DNA of 12,298 nucleotides from the NCBI GenBank assembly GCA_054661495.1, contig BAAFSQ010000293.1, positions 1-12,298 on the forward strand, read 5' to 3'. The position numbers were made by a program, and so were the translations under genes. The notes under the pieces were generated by a model. It made no database searches, had not been told where the DNA came from, and saw only the letters and a program-made list of their open reading frames with translations. This document shows positions 24 through 10,197 of the stretch, in pieces. Positions within the stretch are counted from its first letter, which is position 1. Each line of letters opens with the position of its first letter. The stretch is from Zygophlyctis sp. KS116. Its lineage: Eukaryota; Fungi; Chytridiomycota.

Positions 24-1283
24 ATGGAAAATCTTAAAAGAGATCAACTCAATGAAATGCTTCCAAATTCAATAGTTTATAGAGAATTGGCAAATAGGAT
101 TTTAGAGGTGGAATCAAATTTAGAGGTTATGATAGAGAATCAGTTGAAGACCGCTTTACAAGGCGTTATGAGCGAATATTTCAATAGAGAGAGAGTAACA
201 ATACAAAATGAAGGAAATACGGCACGGGGAGGAGAAGTGTCTGATGGAGAATTACGTGGAAATAATGAAGGAAATAACTCACGTACCGAGGAAGTTCGAG
301 GAAGATCACATGATAATTCAAAGTCACGTGGAGAAAAACGGAATTTTAAAATCCCGAAAGTTAAAATTGAACCAAAATTAAATGGACCCTCAAATTTTAA
401 TTACTGGAAATTAATGATGGAAGGACAAATGAAGGCTACGAATATATTTTTAGCTATAAACCAGAAGTTAGATGAAAATGATGAAATGAATTTAGTAGCA
501 CTTGATTTTATTGTTAGAAGTGTGGGAAATCAAATGATACCACTCATATTAGATGCTAAAACTGCATATGATGCATGGGATAAAATCAAAAATTATTGTG
601 CACCAAAAAATGCCAGTGAAATTAGAAGAATTAGGAAACAATTAGCATTGAAGGAAATGGAAGGAAAGAATATAGATGGTTATATTATGAGTTTTAAAAA
701 ATTATACTCAGAATTATGCAATCAGGGAATACTTATACAAGATGACGAATTAATATCTTATGTTTTAAATGGTTTACCTAATGAATTAAGTACGATTGCA
801 ACATTGGTGGAGAATCAAGCAGTAAATTTTGAAGATGCATGTTCAAAATTAAGATCTATGATTAAAGATATGAAGGATTATACAGGAGGAGGTGATAAAA
901 ATACAGAAAGAGGATTAGCTGCACTAACAGATAAAAATAAAAATAACTCGAGAGGATATTCAGGAAGAGGTCGTGGAAGTTCAAGAGGAGGAAAAGAACG
1001 AAATTTTAAAAAGTGCTATGTATGTGGAGATAAAGGACATATTACAAAAAATTGCAAGTATGTCAGATGTCATAAATGCAAGAAGGAAGGTCATACAGCC
1101 GATAAATGCACAGAAGGAAACAAAAATGATGGTCAATCTGACGAATCAGATCTTGGATTAATGATACAAGAAGTTGCCTTAAAAGGTGGAATAGTAGAAG
1201 AAAATTGGATATTGGACAGTGGATGTTCTTCTCATATATGTTATGATAAAAACAAGTTTCAGAATTTTAAATTGTTGGAGTAA
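24..1283 (+). CDS. gag: Element A gag-pol, 5' part: gag, two CCHC zinc knuckles and the start of the aspartic protease. Truncated by the insertion; bases after 1272 and the stop come from element B's LTR
   Basis: KLNGPSNFNYW gag start motif; VLNGLP; CYVCGDKGHITKNC and CHKCKKEGHTADKC; WILDSGCSSH (catalytic Asp codon at 1215). Confidence 0.93.
   Translation: MENLKRDQLNEMLPNSIVYRELANRILEVESNLEVMIENQLKTALQGVMSEYFNRERVTIQNEGNTARGGEVSDGELRGNNEGNNSRTEEVRGRSHDNSKSRGEKRNFKIPKVKIEPKLNGPSNFNYWKLMMEGQMKATNIFLAINQKLDENDEMNLVALDFIVRSVGNQMIPLILDAKTAYDAWDKIKNYCAPKNASEIRRIRKQLALKEMEGKNIDGYIMSFKKLYSELCNQGILIQDDELISYVLNGLPNELSTIATLVENQAVNFEDACSKLRSMIKDMKDYTGGGDKNTERGLAALTDKNKNNSRGYSGRGRGSSRGGKERNFKKCYVCGDKGHITKNCKYVRCHKCKKEGHTADKCTEGNKNDGQSDESDLGLMIQEVALKGGIVEENWILDSGCSSHICYDKNKFQNFKLLE
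1268..1272 (+). repeat. 5-bp target-site duplication of element B, left copy (TAAAT)
   Basis: TAAAT immediately precedes the TG at 1273 and recurs at 6908-6912 after the terminal CA. Confidence 0.95.
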
Positions 1284-1578
1284 ATTACTTATACGTCCTA
1301 TGTGTTAATCTTACCTATCACTTACTCACTAAATCACACCAGTTTAATGACTGAAGACAATAACAGTTTAACTGATCAAGCAAGTATCAAATTTGGATAT
1401 TTAAGCATTAAAATAAGGGTCATGATGAAGTAGTTTTTCATCCCCAATGTATCATTTGACTATCAGCTGATTATAAATTTGATGGGTATAAATACCGAGA
1501 GGGTAAAAATAAAGGAGTTTTCGATAATTTCAGAAAGTATCCGGAGTTAAATTTACTATTGAGAAAGTAACTCTGTCA
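1273..1578 (+). repeat. Element B 5' LTR (306 bp)
   Basis: TGTTGGAGTAAATT...CTCTGTCA; no difference from 6602-6907 found on reading the two copies side by side. Confidence 0.97.
1487..1513 (+). promoter_or_regulatory. Candidate TATA box (TATAAATA, 1487-1494) and poly(A) signal (AATAAA, 1508-1513) in element B LTR; copies at 6816-6823 and 6837-6842
   Basis: Consensus matches in the 3' third of the LTR. The AT-rich background limits certainty. Confidence 0.45.
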
Positions 1579-1592
1579 GATTAACAGTCGAA
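1579..1592 (+). promoter_or_regulatory. Primer-binding site of element B, complementary to the tRNA-Asn(GUU) anticodon arm (half-tRNA type)
   Basis: GATTAACAGTCGAA directly follows the LTR CA with no TGG. Its reverse complement TTCGA-CT-GTT-AA-TC reads as anticodon stem 5' side, a 7-nt loop with GTT anticodon, and 2 nt of the 3' stem. Confidence 0.8.
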
Positions 1593-1600
1593 ATTATAAG

Positions 1601-2437
1601 ATGAATATGAATATGAATGTGACAATTATTTTTTATAAACGCTACTGCAAAAATCTGGCTAAGAGAAAGAAATTGAACAATCACAATGGGCATAGGTGGA
1701 TACAAGATATGACTTCTGCCTTTTACAGATTCCAGGTCAAGGATGTGGTCTTGGCAGGTGAACCTAAGCCTGAAGCAGCTAATGTAGGAGAAAAAGATGA
1801 AGACTTCAATAAGAGAAGATCTGATTGGAATAGAAAGGACGACATAGCGAAATCTCTCATATATGATTCGTTGTCAGATGACTATAAGGCCTTGTTTCAG
1901 TGGACTCTCACATCGTCCGAAAATTTGAAAACAATCAAAGATAAGGTGTTGGACAACAGTATTTCGGCAATGAAATTGATGAAAGCTGAACTTGAATCTA
2001 TTAGTCAAAAATCTAATGAAACTATTATTGAATATTTTAATAGATGGAATTCGTCTCATTCAAAATATAGAGATGCTGGGGGTGTACTCTCAGAACCAGA
2101 GCAGTTGGCTATCTTTGTGAACAAGTTAAACTCAAATTTAGACTCTGTAGTTGGACCAATTATCTCAAAAGAAAAGTATGATGTTTCGTTCAAAGATTTA
2201 TTGAATGAATTAAAGAATTATGAAAACTTTCTTAAATCAAGAAAGGTTGAACTAAATGAACAAGTACTGTTCACAAAGGAGAAGAAGATCGGAAAGACAG
2301 AAGAAGTACTAAAGGAATTCAACATGAACCTAGTCTGTTACAATTGTGGAGGCTTTGGACACAAGACATTGAAGTGCTCATCGCCGAGACGAAATGGAAT
2401 AAAGTTACCTCATTCCTCATTGGGATATGATTTTTAA
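1601..2437 (+). CDS. gag: Element B gag (278 aa) with one CCHC zinc knuckle
   Basis: KLNNHNGHRW; WNRKDDIAKSLI; QKSNETIIEYF (copia-type capsid motifs); CYNCGGFGHKTLKC. Confidence 0.92.
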   Translation: MNMNMNVTIIFYKRYCKNLAKRKKLNNHNGHRWIQDMTSAFYRFQVKDVVLAGEPKPEAANVGEKDEDFNKRRSDWNRKDDIAKSLIYDSLSDDYKALFQWTLTSSENLKTIKDKVLDNSISAMKLMKAELESISQKSNETIIEYFNRWNSSHSKYRDAGGVLSEPEQLAIFVNKLNSNLDSVVGPIISKEKYDVSFKDLLNELKNYENFLKSRKVELNEQVLFTKEKKIGKTEEVLKEFNMNLVCYNCGGFGHKTLKCSSPRRNGIKLPHSSLGYDF

Positions 2438-5400
2438 GAAGAAGACTCAAAGTCAAGATACACGAGATAATGGTTTTATTAATGTTAAAGATGCAAATCA
2501 TTGCGTCAGAGAAAGAGAAGGTCAACAATTAGTCGAATTCACTATGGAGGAGGATGAATATCCATATCCATGTGACCCCCCGGAAAAAGGAAATAATATA
2601 ACAACATATGATTGTTATTATGGTTCATTCAATCAGAATGAGTTTGATGCATTCAATCTGAATGAATTTGAGTCATTCAATCTGAATGAAGATAATTTAA
2701 ATTTAGGTCAATTAGATTCATTCAATCTGAATGAAGAAAAAGATTACACTATTTTGGACAGTGGAAGTACAATCAGTATTTTCAAGAACTTGGAGTATTT
2801 TGATTTGAATTTATTCAAGTCTTATTCTAAACCACAATCACTTGGGACATACAAGAAAGACTCTGATCAAGGAGAAGGTGATACTTTAGGTGAAGGTCCT
2901 GTATCATTGAGGATCATCAGATCAGATCAAAGTTACTTTGCTCTGAATCTTAAAAGAGCTATATATTGCCCTTCCTCGAGACTTAATATCATCTCAGAGG
3001 GCTATTTACAACAAGTTGGTGGAATTGAATTTAAATCTACTCAAAATGGAAAAGATGCATATCTAAATGGCAATTATATTTTTAGTGCTAAATTACAATC
3101 AAATTTACTTTATACTATTGATATGGATACTGGAGGACTTGACCAAATTCTCTACACATATAGGAGTGGACTTAAAGACCCAGAATTGATACATCAAAGA
3201 TTCGGACATCAATCCAATGCAAGAATTTGTAAGTCTGTGGACTCTGTCATTGGTTTAAATATGTTAACACCAAGAAGGGATCACTGTGAAATTTGTTCTG
3301 TTACAAAGTCTAAGTATAAGACACATCTTAAACCTTATAAAAGACAACCATATGAACCTTTAGGAATGGTTGTGATGGACTATAAGGGACCTTTCTCACA
3401 GCAATCAAAAGAAGGTTTCACTGGATATATTGTGTTTATTGATGTGTATTCTCATTTTGGACAAGTATTTGGACTTAAAAAGAAGGATGAATCTTTATCA
3501 AAGTTTATTGAATTCCAATTATGGATTGAGACACAAACCAATTCTAAAATCAAATGTGTCAGATCTGACCAAGCAAAAGAGATCATTTATGGAACTTTTG
3601 CTGATCATTTAAAGAAAATTGGAATTAGACAACAATATACTTCTGCAGATTCTCAATCCTCAAATGGGACAGCAGAAGCTAGAATCAGAGTTATCAATCA
3701 GATGGCGAGATCAATGATACAACATTCAAGTGTATCACCTGGCTTCTGGTTCAGGGCAGTACACACTGCAAACTACCTATACAACAGGACTCTCAATGCA
3801 AATAATCAGACAAAGACACCTTTTGAATTGATATTTAATCGTCAGCCTAGAGTTGACTATTTCAGAGTCTTTGGTTGCATATGTTATTTTTATATACACA
3901 AACAATACAGGAAAACTTTTGATAAGAATGCCAAAGTAGGGAGATTTCTTGGATACTCAGATAATAGTAATTCTTATGTGATTTTCTCTCAAAACAAATT
4001 CATTTTATCTAGACATGTGGATTTTAATGAAAATATTTTTGACTACAAAGAACTAAAAGATGAAGTAGTTGAAACATCAAAACACGTGCAGAAGGAAAGC
4101 AAAAGACAAGTAACGTTTGATATTCCGGCCGATCAAATGATAGGACGACAAGATTTTAGTATTTTACAATATGGAATGGCACATAATCGAGAGAGTAACC
4201 AAACAAATAATGATAATGTACGAGCACTTAATCAATTTGATGAGAATAATGGACAGTCATATAACCAAGAGAATAATCAAGCTAATGATGATAATGTGGA
4301 ATCCGATAATCCAGATAATCAAGCTACTAATGATAATGTGGGATCAAATAGAAGAGTTCATTCTAGAATATCTGAGACGCAGAGTTTGAATTCTAGACTA
4401 CCTTTGCCTGTGACAAGCTTCAATCGTGGTTTAACATTAAGAGGGAGAGGTGGTCGTGGCCGTGTTTCAAATAGAATTCAAGGTAGGACAGAAGAGCAAA
4501 GATCTGTACTTCAAGATGATGTGTCTGGATCTAGAATGCCCAGATTACGACTAATTCTGCCCCCTAGATCACCAGAAAGTTCAGAACCAGTACAATCAAG
4601 CGAATTATCACAATCTAGTGAATCTTTAGAGGAACTTACACGCATAAATACGTTGAATAACAGAAGTTTGAGTAGTGAATTAAATGGAAACTTCTGGCAA
4701 CAATTACCTATAGATGTTGATGCGCCCCGGAGAACAAGATCCTCAAATACTCAAGACACTGTCAATGCTCTCAATATTAATTATATTGATGAGGAAATAA
4801 ATATACTAGAAAGTATAAACTATTTGGATGATGACGTGCCGAATAATTATAAACAAGCACGAAAACATTCAGAATCAAAAGGATGGATGGAAGCACTTCA
4901 AAGAGAATACAGACAATTAGATAATCTTAATGCTTTTAATTTAATACCAAGACGTGATGTTACTGATCAGAAAATTAATACTACAACTATTACTTTCACA
5001 AGAAAACCAGCTCCACTATTATATAAGGCCAGGCTGTGTTTTCGTGGTGATCTTGAAAAGAATAATCTTCAACTGGAAGACACATTTGCCAGTGTCATCC
5101 GAACTGAAAATCTGAGACTTGTCTTATGCATGATTTTGTCTCTCAAATGGAAATTTGTTTTTATAGATATTAGCAATGCATTTATCAACGCGAAGATGCC
5201 AAGACTCGTTTATTTAGAGATCCCAGTGGATCACCCGGACGCGGGAAAGCGACCCACACATGTATTTAAGTTGAATCGTGCACTCTATGGCACAACTGAT
5301 GCTCCTAAATTGTGGAATGATGAATTATGGGCTACTCTAAAAGAAATGGGTTATTTAAGAACAAAATCTGATTGGAATTTATTTTATAAGGACAAATCTT

Positions 5401-6380
5401 TTATAGTGTTTCACGTTGATGACGGGATACTCTCGGCTTCTGATGACCATGCATTGAATGAAATAATAGCGAAATTAAGACAAAAATATAAAATGACTGT
5501 ACAGGAAAGTAATATCAAATACTTGAAGCTCAATATTAAAATTACACAGAATTGTATCTATATCGATCAATCTGAGTACATAGAAGAGATGACAAGAAAA
5601 TTTGAAGTTAGTTTAGAGAAGAAATATGACACACCAATGATCACCAATTTCGTCAGTCAGGAATCGAATAATGATCAAATACTAGATGAAAGTACACCTT
5701 ATCGAGGAATCATTGGCTCTCTACTCTTTATTGCTCGACAAACCAGACCAGATATTACGTTTGCTGTCAACTATCTTAGTCAGTACGTTACAAAACCTAC
5801 CAAGTCACATTGGAATGCTGCTAAAAGAGTGTTAATTTATCTTTACAACACGAGATTTGACTCTTTACGTATTGGACCAGTGAATAATGAAGGAATAAAA
5901 TGTTATTCAGATGCTACTTGGGCTGATTGTACTGAAACTCGACGCTCTCGATCAGGAGGAGTATTATTCTATAATGGCACATTAATAAGTGCGCATTCAC
6001 ACACTCAACGATCAGTATCGCTATCCAGCACGCAAGCAGAGTATCAGGCACTGACTAGTGCAATCCAAGAGATTATTTACTATAGACAACTTCTAGGGGA
6101 GTTAGGATATGCCAATAACTTACCTACTCCGCTAATGTGTGATAATCAAGGAGCTCTATATTTGGCAGTGTCTACCAAAAATCATACTAGAATCAAACAC
6201 ATTGAATTAAGATATCACTATATACGTGAAACTGTGCAAGAGAAGAAAGTACAATTGATATATATCAATACAAAAGATCAAATAGCTGATATTATGACTA
6301 AGCCACTTGCCAAAGATCAATTTATCAAATTTAAAGAATTAATGGGTATCAAGAATTGGCAGGATGAGTCAAAAATATAA
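2427..6380 (+). CDS. pol: Element B pol polyprotein (protease, integrase, reverse transcriptase, RNase H); +1 frame relative to gag, frame open from 2403
   Basis: ILDSGST; HQRFGH...CEIC; D..D-35-E (VMDYKGP, RSDQ, GTAE); GRFLGYS; YKARL; LYGTTDAP; FHVDD; YSDATW, STQAEY, CDNQ, ADIMTK. Confidence 0.96.
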   Translation: MIFKKKTQSQDTRDNGFINVKDANHCVREREGQQLVEFTMEEDEYPYPCDPPEKGNNITTYDCYYGSFNQNEFDAFNLNEFESFNLNEDNLNLGQLDSFNLNEEKDYTILDSGSTISIFKNLEYFDLNLFKSYSKPQSLGTYKKDSDQGEGDTLGEGPVSLRIIRSDQSYFALNLKRAIYCPSSRLNIISEGYLQQVGGIEFKSTQNGKDAYLNGNYIFSAKLQSNLLYTIDMDTGGLDQILYTYRSGLKDPELIHQRFGHQSNARICKSVDSVIGLNMLTPRRDHCEICSVTKSKYKTHLKPYKRQPYEPLGMVVMDYKGPFSQQSKEGFTGYIVFIDVYSHFGQVFGLKKKDESLSKFIEFQLWIETQTNSKIKCVRSDQAKEIIYGTFADHLKKIGIRQQYTSADSQSSNGTAEARIRVINQMARSMIQHSSVSPGFWFRAVHTANYLYNRTLNANNQTKTPFELIFNRQPRVDYFRVFGCICYFYIHKQYRKTFDKNAKVGRFLGYSDNSNSYVIFSQNKFILSRHVDFNENIFDYKELKDEVVETSKHVQKESKRQVTFDIPADQMIGRQDFSILQYGMAHNRESNQTNNDNVRALNQFDENNGQSYNQENNQANDDNVESDNPDNQATNDNVGSNRRVHSRISETQSLNSRLPLPVTSFNRGLTLRGRGGRGRVSNRIQGRTEEQRSVLQDDVSGSRMPRLRLILPPRSPESSEPVQSSELSQSSESLEELTRINTLNNRSLSSELNGNFWQQLPIDVDAPRRTRSSNTQDTVNALNINYIDEEINILESINYLDDDVPNNYKQARKHSESKGWMEALQREYRQLDNLNAFNLIPRRDVTDQKINTTTITFTRKPAPLLYKARLCFRGDLEKNNLQLEDTFASVIRTENLRLVLCMILSLKWKFVFIDISNAFINAKMPRLVYLEIPVDHPDAGKRPTHVFKLNRALYGTTDAPKLWNDELWATLKEMGYLRTKSDWNLFYKDKSFIVFHVDDGILSASDDHALNEIIAKLRQKYKMTVQESNIKYLKLNIKITQNCIYIDQSEYIEEMTRKFEVSLEKKYDTPMITNFVSQESNNDQILDESTPYRGIIGSLLFIARQTRPDITFAVNYLSQYVTKPTKSHWNAAKRVLIYLYNTRFDSLRIGPVNNEGIKCYSDATWADCTETRRSRSGGVLFYNGTLISAHSHTQRSVSLSSTQAEYQALTSAIQEIIYYRQLLGELGYANNLPTPLMCDNQGALYLAVSTKNHTRIKHIELRYHYIRETVQEKKVQLIYINTKDQIADIMTKPLAKDQFIKFKELMGIKNWQDESKI
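2625..2741 (+). repeat. Coding 24-nt repeat, about 4 copies, encoding (S/A)FN(L/Q)NExx
   Basis: CATTCAATC(A/T)GAATGA in units starting at 2625, 2649, 2673 and 2718. Confidence 0.85.
4197..4340 (+). repeat. Three degenerate NQxxxDNV coding repeats in the integrase-RT linker
   Basis: NQTNNDNV, NQANDDNV, NQATNDNV; TGATAATGT recurs three times. Confidence 0.7.
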
Positions 6381-6588
6381 AGAGAACCGAGGAATAATAT
6401 TTCCTGATGATTGTAGTATCAATTTGATATCAAACTCATAATGAAAATTTTCAATTCTAGTTAATGCAATTAGTGTGGATTTGGATCAATATCGGAATTT
6501 AGGAATATAGATGCGTAATTCGTGTTAACTAATATCTATTACTATAGTAGATATCTATGATAAGAGTATTTTACAGCAAGAGACATGT

Positions 6589-6601
6589 AAGATAGGAGGA
6601 G
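6589..6601 (+). promoter_or_regulatory. Polypurine tract of element B
   Basis: AAGATAGGAGGAG immediately before the 3' LTR TG. Confidence 0.88.
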
Positions 6602-6907
6602 TGTTGGAGTAAATTACTTATACGTCCTATGTGTTAATCTTACCTATCACTTACTCACTAAATCACACCAGTTTAATGACTGAAGACAATAACAGTTTAA
6701 CTGATCAAGCAAGTATCAAATTTGGATATTTAAGCATTAAAATAAGGGTCATGATGAAGTAGTTTTTCATCCCCAATGTATCATTTGACTATCAGCTGAT
6801 TATAAATTTGATGGGTATAAATACCGAGAGGGTAAAAATAAAGGAGTTTTCGATAATTTCAGAAAGTATCCGGAGTTAAATTTACTATTGAGAAAGTAAC
6901 TCTGTCA
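6602..6907 (+). repeat. Element B 3' LTR (306 bp)
   Basis: Direct repeat of 1273-1578. Confidence 0.97.
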
Positions 6908-6912
6908 TAAAT
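6908..6912 (+). repeat. 5-bp target-site duplication of element B, right copy (TAAAT)
   Basis: Matches 1268-1272. Confidence 0.95.
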
Positions 6913-9704
6913 ATCATAAAAACACTTTAGGACAATTGGATAAGGAAAATTCACTTAAAAGTGAAGGAATCGGGACTACACAAGTTGATAATTTAATTTT
7001 GAAAAATTGTTTGTATGTGCCAGATGCCGGTTACAATTTGATATCAGTATCTAAATTGATTAAAGAAGGATATGAAGTTACATTTGAAGAACATAAAGCT
7101 CACGTAAAATCTAGAGAGACAAACGTTTCTTTTATTCAGTCAAACAATATTTACGTCTTATCGCAAGAACGAGCAATGATTTCAGGTACAAAAGATATAT
7201 TACATAGACGGTTTGCGCACTTAAATTGCAAAATGTTAAAGTTTATGGTTGATAAAAATATGGTTGAAGGAATTAATGGGTGGAAAAACTTAGAAAATAA
7301 TTTTTGTGATGTTTGTCATTTGGCGAAAATGTCTAGAAAACAATTCAAAACGAAAAATATAGAAGAGTTTGAAAAATTAGATATTATACATGCGGATTTA
7401 TGTGGACCTCTCCCCAGATCTCTTGGAGATAATAAGTATTTTCTTCTATTAACCGATGAAAAAACAAGATTTCGATGGATATATTTCTTAAAAACTAAAG
7501 ATCAAACGTACAATTTAATGATAAAGTTTATTACGCTGGTTAAAAATCAGTTTCAGAAGTGTTTTAAATTTTTAAGAACAGATAATGGTGGGGAATTTAT
7601 ATCATATGCAAGTCAATCATTATTAGAACAAAACGGAATTATTCATGAAAGGACAGTGGTGTATACACCTCAGCAAAATGGAATTTCTGAGAGAGGAAAT
7701 AGGATAGTAGTGAATATGATACGATGTATGCTAGTTGATTCAAATTTATCATATGTATTTTGGGCTGAGGCAGCTCAAACAGCCATTTTTATATTAAACA
7801 GAAGTTTTACTCATGTGTTGAAAGATAAAACACCCTTTGAAGCGTTATTTGGATCTAAGCCAAATATTCAACATTTAAAAGTTTTTGGCTCAAATTGTAT
7901 CTTTAAGGTTCATGATGATATTCGGAAAAAGTTGGATCCAAAAGGAAAGTTTGGAATATTTTTAGGATATGAAGGAAATTCTATTTTTAGAGTCTACGAT
8001 CAGGAAAAATCAATAGTTATACGAACAAGAGATATAGTTGTTAAAGAAGGAGATTTCACTCGCAGAGTGAACATTGATGATCAAGATGTTATTGTTGTGA
8101 AGGATACAGACAATGAAGATATTGAAATTTATGATGGAATTGATCAAGTATTATTAACAGTTGATGGTTATCCGGAAACATATGATGAAGCTTTAAAAGA
8201 GGACACAAATTGGAAGGAGGCAATCAAAAAGGAATATCAAAGTTTAATCGACAATCAAACTTGGGTATTAGTAGAAAGACCGAAAAACAGAAAAATTATT
8301 AAAGGACGTTGGGTATTCGTAAAGAAATTTAAATCGGATGGATCTTTGGAGCGCTATAAAGCACGATGGGTAGCTAAAGGCTACACACAAGTAAAAGGAG
8401 TTGATTATTTAAATGTCTTTTCACCTACAGCTAGGAATACTACTTTGAGGATGATAATAAGCATAATAATTCAAAGGGGATTATATTCGGGACATTTTGA
8501 TGTCGAAACGGCTTATCTAAATGGTATATTACAAGAAGAGATCTATATGGACCAGGTTATTGGATTCGAAGATGGAACAGGAAAAGTTTGTTTATTAAAG
8601 AAGACTTTATATGGGTTGAAACAAGCTGGAAGAGAATGGAATAAGCGAATCACAGATTTTTGGATTGGTAGAGGATTCAAATCAACAATAATGGATCCAT
8701 GTTTATTTTTTGGAGAAAAAAATGGAAAATTAATACTTATTTTAGTATATGTTGATGATCTAATAGTTGCTGTTGAAAATGAAGGAGATTTGGAATATTT
8801 AGCAAATGAATTAAAAAAGGAATTTATCATTAAAAATCTAGGAAAATTATCTTATTATTTGGGCTGGAAAATTGAAATAGATGATGGGATTGCAAAGATA
8901 TCACAAAGTTCATATAGGAAAAAAGTATTGCGAAGATTTAAAAAATATCGCTACGGTCGAGGATTGTCACCGATAACAAAGATTCTTAATGGGGAAGAGT
9001 CAGGAGATGAAACATATCCATTTCAAAGAATTCTGGGCAGTTTGATGTACTTAGCCACATCTACAAGACCTGATTTGACTTTTGGAATTTCATTTTTATC
9101 TAGATGCATGAAAAAACCGAAAAAGGAAGATCAGATGATGTTAAATGGAGTTCTAACGTATTTAGAGAAAAATGGGAACTTAGGATTGGAATATAAAAGA
9201 AAGAATGGGTTAAATCTTAATGAAGTAGAAGTTACTCTTTATTGTGATTCTGATTGGGCTGGTGATAAACAAGATTGTGCATCTACGTCAGGATATGTTT
9301 GTTTTTTAAATGGAAATTTAATTAGTTGGAGATCAAAAAAACAAGATCGAACAGCTCAAAGTTCGACTGAAGCAGAATACATAGCTCTATTTCATGGTAT
9401 ACAAGAGGCTATATGGGTAAAACAATTAATTGAAGAATTGGGATTTAAAGTAAAAGATGGATTTGTCAAGATTTATCAAGATAATAAGGGAGCAATCAAT
9501 CTAGCAGAAAATGCAGTCTACAGTCCCAGGACAAAGCATGTTGATATAAAATATCATTTTATTAGACAAGCAGTGGCTAGAGGAGAGATTAAGTTGGAGT
9601 ATATTGGAACCGAAAATATGAAGGCTGATGGACTTACGAAAGCTGTTAGTGGAGGTAGATTGAAGAAATTATTATTCGATGTGGATCTTGAAGGAGCAAG
9701 TTAG
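6913..9704 (+). CDS. pol: Element A gag-pol, 3' part: protease C-terminal half, integrase, RT and RNase H. The ORF-track start at 6936 is an internal TTG
   Basis: NLISVSKL; LHRRFAH...CDVC; HADLCGP, RTDNGGEF, QNGISER (D-35-E); GIFLGY; YKARWVAKG; LYGLKQ; YVDD; YCDSDWAG, STEAEY, ADGLTK. Confidence 0.95.
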
Positions 9705-10016: not shown

Positions 10017-10081
10017 TTTCCATCAAAGACATTCCCACCTACGCCTACTGACTTCAGGAAATCCTGAACCGATTTAAGGGT

Positions 10082-10094
10082 TGGGCCCATAACC
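10082..10094 (-). promoter_or_regulatory. Half-tRNA-iMet primer-binding site of element C
   Basis: GGTTATGGGCCCA directly after CA. It is complementary to the initiator-Met anticodon arm (UGGGCCCAUAACC), the PBS type of Drosophila copia. Confidence 0.85.
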
Positions 10095-10197
10095 TGAGGA
10101 ACCTCAGTCACGCTATACGTTTAACCGGTCCTAAACCTCCAGTCATGACGAATGACTCCACGCGGTCAAGCCATTCTCCGAAGAACGTAACCCAACA
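10095..10197 (-). repeat. Element C 5' LTR (103 bp)
   Basis: TG...CA on the minus strand, starting TGTTGG and abutting the PBS; visibly more GC-rich than its flanks. Confidence 0.68.

Follow-up and report, generated by a model that had tools for sequence, protein, structure and literature searches.

A Ty1/copia retrotransposon of the chytrid Zygophlyctis sp. KS116 with a primer-binding site that matches the anticodon arm of host tRNA-Asn(GUU)

Elements of the Hemivirus genus are defined by half-tRNA priming, with cDNA synthesis beginning from the 3'-OH of nucleotide 40 (PMC1181622, PMC8515867). The half-tRNA primer comes from tRNA-iMet in Drosophila copia, 1731, yeast Ty5 and Volvox Osser (PMC1181622); an Arg-UCU tRNA fragment primes copia elements of Candida (PMC4139406), and the plant Bianca lineage has a half tRNA-Ile primer (Neumann 2019, PMC6317226). 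Kojima (2024) reported primer-binding sites (PBSs) for the anticodon loop of tRNA-Asn-GTT in Helenus/Copia elements of rust fungi, along with tRNA-Tyr-GTA halves in the same hosts (PMC10886601). Eight internal sequences in Data S1 of that paper, such as Helenus-3_PGr-I, Helenus-2B_PSt-I, LTR-2_PSt-I and Helenus-9B_PHord-I, start with c(g/a)ATTAACAGTCGAA (PMC10886601). Its section 3.6 names the primer "tRNA-Asp" twice and "tRNA-Asn-GTT" once (PMC10886601); Asn is what the data show, since the Asn anticodon loop, CUGUUAA, has its complement, TTAACAG, in the sequences.

In this paper, we describe a site of this kind in an early-diverging fungus. The window—the whole stretch of 12,298 nucleotides that we analysed, contig C293 (BAAFSQ010000293.1) of the 12.7-Mb assembly of Zygophlyctis sp. 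KS116—carries a Ty1/copia-type LTR element at 1273-6907. Its two LTRs, of 306 bp each and both on the plus strand (1273-1578 and 6602-6907), are 100% identical, read TGTTGGAG...CTCTGTCA with TG...CA termini, and are flanked by the target-site duplication TAAAT at 1268-1272 and 6908-6912. A TATAAA-like box can be read from the sequence near 1489, within the 5' LTR. Between the LTRs, all on the plus strand, lie the PBS at 1579-1592, a gag ORF of 278 aa with a Retrotran_gag_2 domain (1601-2437), a pol ORF of 1317 aa with pre-integrase, integrase core, SH3-like and RVT_2 domains in copia order (2427-6380), and the polypurine tract AAGATAGGAGGAG (6589-6601), which adjoins the 3' LTR and recurs 5' of the 3' LTR of the related copy L052. 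The element belongs with Ty1/copia (Pseudoviridae) both by its contents, with gag, and integrase ahead of the RVT_2 reverse transcriptase, between LTRs (the full order is Retrotran_gag_2, gag_pre-integrs, rve, SH3_retrovirus, RVT_2), and by its termini, with TG...CA LTR ends, a 5-bp duplication and a polypurine tract just ahead of the 3' LTR.

The reading frames of gag and pol separate at a tandem CCTCATT CCTCATT (2408-2421, plus strand), and the extra 7 nt found there are missing from L052 and from contigs of metagenome runs X1 and X2; L052, at 85% amino acid identity to the window element, reads gag and pol in a single frame of 1543 codons. The frame change may be a mutation of the window copy and not a programmed +1 frameshift signal. 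Because the duplication splits its gag and pol frames, the window copy may itself be non-functional, though its PBS is intact.

The element is nested within the gag-pol of an outer copia element, likewise on the plus strand, whose gag part (24-1272: Retrotran_gag_2, zf-CCHC and the start of Pol_BBD) breaks off at the insertion and whose pol part resumes at 6913 (6913-9704: the remainder of Pol_BBD, followed by integrase and RVT_2). In a contig of metagenome run X1, position 1272 runs directly on to 6926 and TAAAT occurs once; this contig is a diverged copy of the outer element that lacks the insertion, and its empty site fixes the borders of the inner element independently. The window also holds, on the minus strand at 10081-10197, a third element or remnant with a short LTR of about 103 bp (TGTTGGG...CCTCA); directly 3' of that LTR stands GGTTATGGGCCCAA (10081-10094, minus), the complement of positions 27-40 of the host tRNA-iMet, whose genes lie on contigs C10 and C328.

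The PBS of the inner element, GATTAACAGTCGAA, starts right after the last base of the LTR, A1578, with zero spacer, and the sequence that follows the LTR, GATTAACAGTCGAAATTATAAG, contains no TGG-led PBS and no complementarity to a tRNA 3' CCA end. Host tRNA-Asn genes were found by a genome tRNA search and then with ARAGORN, which together gave three tRNA-Asn(GTT) genes, at C51:30685-30758, C365:8636-8709 and C167:11203-11276, all three with the anticodon arm TTCGA-CTGTTAA-TCGAG. The reverse complement of the PBS, TTCGACTGTTAATC, matches gene positions 28-41 at 14 of 14 bases in each of them; these are positions 27-40 in standard numbering, owing to one additional base in the D loop. Pairing would take in the anticodon loop, all of the stem's 5' strand and the first two bases of its 3' strand, with a predicted duplex energy of -18.8 kcal/mol. 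The flanking tRNA bases G26 and G41 are left unmatched by the element, so the complementarity is exactly 14 nt and its limit on the side of the primer's 3' end is C40. As in hemiviruses, then, the site adjoins the 5' LTR and is complementary to an internal tRNA stretch that ends near nucleotide 40. The original prediction had put the motif at 1579-1592, directly behind the LTR with no spacer and no TGG, and had read its reverse complement as tRNA positions 27-40 with a GTT anticodon; the first description proved correct, and the second is exact in the host's own tRNA-Asn genes.

The pairing includes A37, which in tRNA-Asn is expected to be t6A, pairs poorly and would sit four bases from the 3' end of the primer. 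The same problem attends the accepted iMet, Arg and Ile half-primers.

How often does the motif occur in the genome, and where? Exact GATTAACAGTCGAA is present in 18 copies, against 1 for a reversed-pattern control; when up to two mismatches are allowed, the numbers are 140 and 96, so the excess is confined to exact copies. Three of the 18 lie in the tRNA-Asn genes, and all 15 others sit behind an LTR-like end (...CA, ...TA, ...AA or ...AG) and are followed by a short leader. Copia gag/pol lies 3' of 13 of these 15, as long frames with copia domains in nine and as decayed gag/pol in four; of the remaining two, one is on a contig that ends too early to tell and the other is unclear. The spacer is zero in all five elements with both LTRs visible (the window element and those on C152, C495, C509 and C563), and the C152 element is flanked by a 5-bp duplication, CTTCA. 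In none of the 15 does tRNA sequence extend past the 14-mer on either side, and ARAGORN detected no tRNA or tRNA-like sequence in the window. A coincidental match, or the capture of part of a tRNA gene, has only the shortness of the motif to recommend it; set against the 18 copies to 1, the want of any continuing tRNA sequence and the lack of an ARAGORN tRNA in the window, it is hardly credible.

The elements with this site span at least six copia lineages. Those of the window, C152, C518 and C495 form one group with 48-85% polyprotein identity, and identity is only 22-34% for those on C509, C516, C563, C573 and C653, whether they are compared with that group or with one another, a distance at which the outer element also stands from the Asn-PBS lineages. 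A polyprotein tree of local and fetched relatives, whose backbone does not resolve, puts the Asn-PBS elements in three places, with three changes, and its well-supported branches are compatible with a single origin. The motif had been predicted to be conserved among relatives, and it is unchanged although LTRs, leaders and proteins have deeply diverged: an identical site amid deep divergence, equal to the host tRNA, is what a PBS should look like.

This constancy also bears on Tf1-type self-priming, in which the 5' end of the transcript would fold back onto the site. The LTR does hold two complements of 1579-1600, at 1303 and 1524, but each is 8 nt and no longer, and a self-priming site must co-vary with its own LTR, whereas this one is constant across unrelated LTRs and equals a tRNA; we regard self-priming as extremely improbable. 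Slightly less improbable, and still very unlikely, is that the 14-mer is conserved as a cis element for something else—packaging, dimerisation or protein binding—and resembles tRNA-Asn incidentally. Priming is, after all, proposed here from sequence, and the predicted leader fold gives a stem that partly buries the site. That fold, however, is no better than those of shuffled sequence (z = -0.76), the identity to the host tRNA covers exactly the anticodon arm, the 14-mer sits precisely at the edge of the LTR, the position required of a PBS, and the same place is occupied in other elements by 14-mers for Lys(CUU), Ile (with C opposite inosine) and iMet. For the same z value, we dropped the idea of a U5/leader stem that presents the PBS.

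We therefore come to the reading that we consider highly probable: that the element at 1273-6907 is a hemivirus-type Ty1/copia element whose minus-strand DNA would be primed by a 5' fragment of mature tRNA-Asn(GUU) and not by a tRNA 3' end. On the model of copia, Ty5 and Tca2, tRNA-Asn would be cut between nucleotides 40 and 41, and the 5' fragment would anneal to the PBS via nucleotides 27-40. Minus-strand strong-stop DNA would then arise as reverse transcriptase extends the 3'-OH of C40 through U5 and R, A1578 serving as the first base of the template. Plus-strand strong-stop synthesis would in turn copy the primer back from C40 up to position 26, which in eukaryotic tRNAs is usually m2,2G and blocks reverse transcriptase, and a copy-back stop at position 26 would regenerate a PBS of exactly 14 nt.

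The exact 3' end of such a primer deserves separate thought. It is unlikely, though less so than the alternatives above, that the primer derives from tRNA-Asn with another 3' end, whether a stress-type half cut in the loop or a fragment that ends at 39, and that the first bases of the 14-mer are merely tolerated sequence adjacent to the LTR. Drosophila copia is said, going back to Kikuchi in 1986, to use a 39-nt fragment, which would count for such an end. On C109 the LTR end CTATTA runs straight into ACAGTCGAA and nothing longer, so that the paired length can differ between elements, and the rust-fungus sequences start a base sooner, with C facing G41, or have A for the G opposite C40. Against this, all 15 non-tRNA copies in the chytrid keep G opposite C40, five of them with an LTR end fixed by LTR-LTR identity, and the base before the 14-mer varies and never matches G41. 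A fragment with its 3' limit at about nucleotide 40 had been predicted, and the PBS limit at nucleotide 40 is that described for hemiviruses (PMC1181622). The host match, the conservation and this 3' limit together support the reading of a half-tRNA-Asn primer, at the level at which sequence can speak.

The same genome search was run with the complements of positions 27-40 of other tRNAs. For Ile it returned 27 copies, 22 with C opposite the edited inosine-34 (CGTTATCAGCACCA) and 5 with the genomic T; we took the five T-form copies as tRNA genes, three of them being in the tRNA list and two presumed. The 22 Ile-half sites would thus reflect the mature, modified tRNA, with C opposite I34. Lys(CUU) gave 16 copies, two in known tRNA genes and 14 outside any ARAGORN-detected tRNA, most of these behind LTR-like ends. 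Such sites, reading GATTAAGAGTCTCA, occur at C588:176-189 (L208), on C461, C351 and C339, at C131:888 and elsewhere, and the one on C588 is followed by a 1243-aa copia polyprotein; the Lys-half reading thus draws on one full polyprotein and 14 short contexts. We found no report of a Lys(CUU) half as primer in the searchable literature. The iMet complement has four copies (two tRNA genes and two element sites, one of which is that at 10081-10094 on the minus strand of the window), Arg(UCU) three (two tRNA genes and one unclear site) and Lys(UUU) two, in tRNA genes only. From the Ile, Lys, iMet and Arg counts it follows that half-tRNA sites are specific to certain tRNAs and always span 27-40. 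A separate observation on the tRNAs of this assembly is that C172:6586-9910 (L022/L023) holds a tight AT-rich cluster of tRNA genes (Trp, Pro, Asp and an ARAGORN-called Pyl-CTA) that looks mitochondrial.

Among variants of the Asn site, seven copies in the genome have one mismatch, and three of these are in element context, on C64, C149 and C109. The C64 copy has G opposite U27 and the C149 copy T opposite G34, both of which still pair as G-U. As for the third, C109:25821-26034 (L213) and C461:1614-2027 (L196) have a homologous LTR end and leader/gag start and different PBSs, Asn-type on C109 and the Lys(CUU) 14-mer on C461. It looks as if related elements have traded the PBS as a module, with an apparent switch between Asn and Lys primers within a family, and the copy-back step proposed above would explain a swap of the whole 14-mer.

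Taken together, these sites suggest something broader, to which we would give an even chance: that four or more 5' tRNA halves, among them Asn-GUU, Lys-CUU, Ile-IAU and iMet, serve the copia elements of this genome as a whole, each with a PBS of exactly 27-40, all primers ending at nucleotide 40, copy-back stopping at 26 and 14-mers being swapped, which would point to a generic host or element activity that makes 40-nt 5' tRNA fragments and to frequent primer switching by copy-back. We also considered the rule that half-primers come only from tRNAs that decode ANN codons (U36, t6A37); it fits Asn, Lys, Ile, iMet and Arg-UCU, and it is broken by the Tyr-GTA halves of rust fungi (PMC10886601), so we gave it up.

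Outside this genome, the closest public homologues of the pol protein are only 25-37% identical. Seven copia relatives were fetched, and none showed an Asn PBS; five of the seven could be read, and two could not, L063 having an unclear LTR layout and L188 no upstream sequence. What they showed were other halves: an Ile-half PBS in the C form, after the LTR, in a copia element of Amoeboaphelidium occidentale (L065:528-541), an iMet-half PBS in a Synchytrium element and two metagenome elements, and an odd Ile-like site in one more. A metagenome scan for DGATTAACAGTCGAA found no copia coding sequence at any of the 80 loci listed. The window element itself is at least 99% identical in contigs from four freshwater or estuary metagenome studies, with no difference at 1579-1592 among the metagenome differences listed. 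In a search of sequencing runs, the matches were in metagenomes, and the element was in no RNA run.

What does this site add? Standard PBS finders look for matches to tRNA 3' ends and would assign no primer to such elements, which are annotated correctly once the PBS is compared with positions 27-40 of the tRNAs of the host itself. To our knowledge, the cut after nucleotide 40 of the tRNA has yet to be explained, even for Drosophila copia and Ty5, and the chytrid, with its four putative half-tRNA primer types that each span exactly 27-40, offers a compact natural setting in which one could ask what makes that cut and how elements switch primers. Taken singly, the Asn site is confirmatory rather than surprising, and the breadth of half-tRNA usage in the genome adds some interest.

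Like copia, 1731, Ty5 and Osser, the window element is copia-type and has a PBS that adjoins the LTR and pairs with the anticodon arm; the primer is iMet in those elements and would be Asn here, and for copia and Ty5 it has been shown experimentally, whereas ours is read from sequence. With the Candida elements it shares a fungal host, copia affiliation and a non-Met tRNA fragment, from a different tRNA. Bianca, too, is a copia lineage with half-molecule priming by an elongator tRNA, there Ile and in plants, and a Bianca-like Ile-half type is present 22 times in the chytrid genome.

Nearest of all are the Helenus/Copia elements of rust fungi, because window positions 1579-1592 carry the same motif, ATTAACAGTCGAA, as Data S1 of PMC10886601. 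The original prediction had held out the possibility that an Asn-fragment PBS was novel; with the same motif in the rust-fungus elements of Kojima 2024 (PMC10886601), the Asn half-primer has already been described, and ours is no new primer type. The two share the tRNA, the motif, a PBS right after an LTR that ends in CA, fungal hosts, a 5-bp target-site duplication and mobilisation by Copia. We rejected the idea that the window element is itself a Helenus, since it encodes gag and pol and ARAGORN found no tRNA in the window. The rust-fungus families are mostly non-autonomous, with tRNA-like sequence in the LTR, whereas the window element is of the autonomous kind, and their hosts are basidiomycetes, whereas ours is a chytrid in which at least six deep copia lineages carry the site. 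Asn-half priming would thereby extend from rust fungi to an early-diverging fungal lineage, and the new aspects appear to be the host, a chytrid, the range of lineages that carry the site and its occurrence alongside putative Lys(CUU)-, Ile(IAU)- and iMet-half PBSs, including the apparent switch between Asn and Lys.
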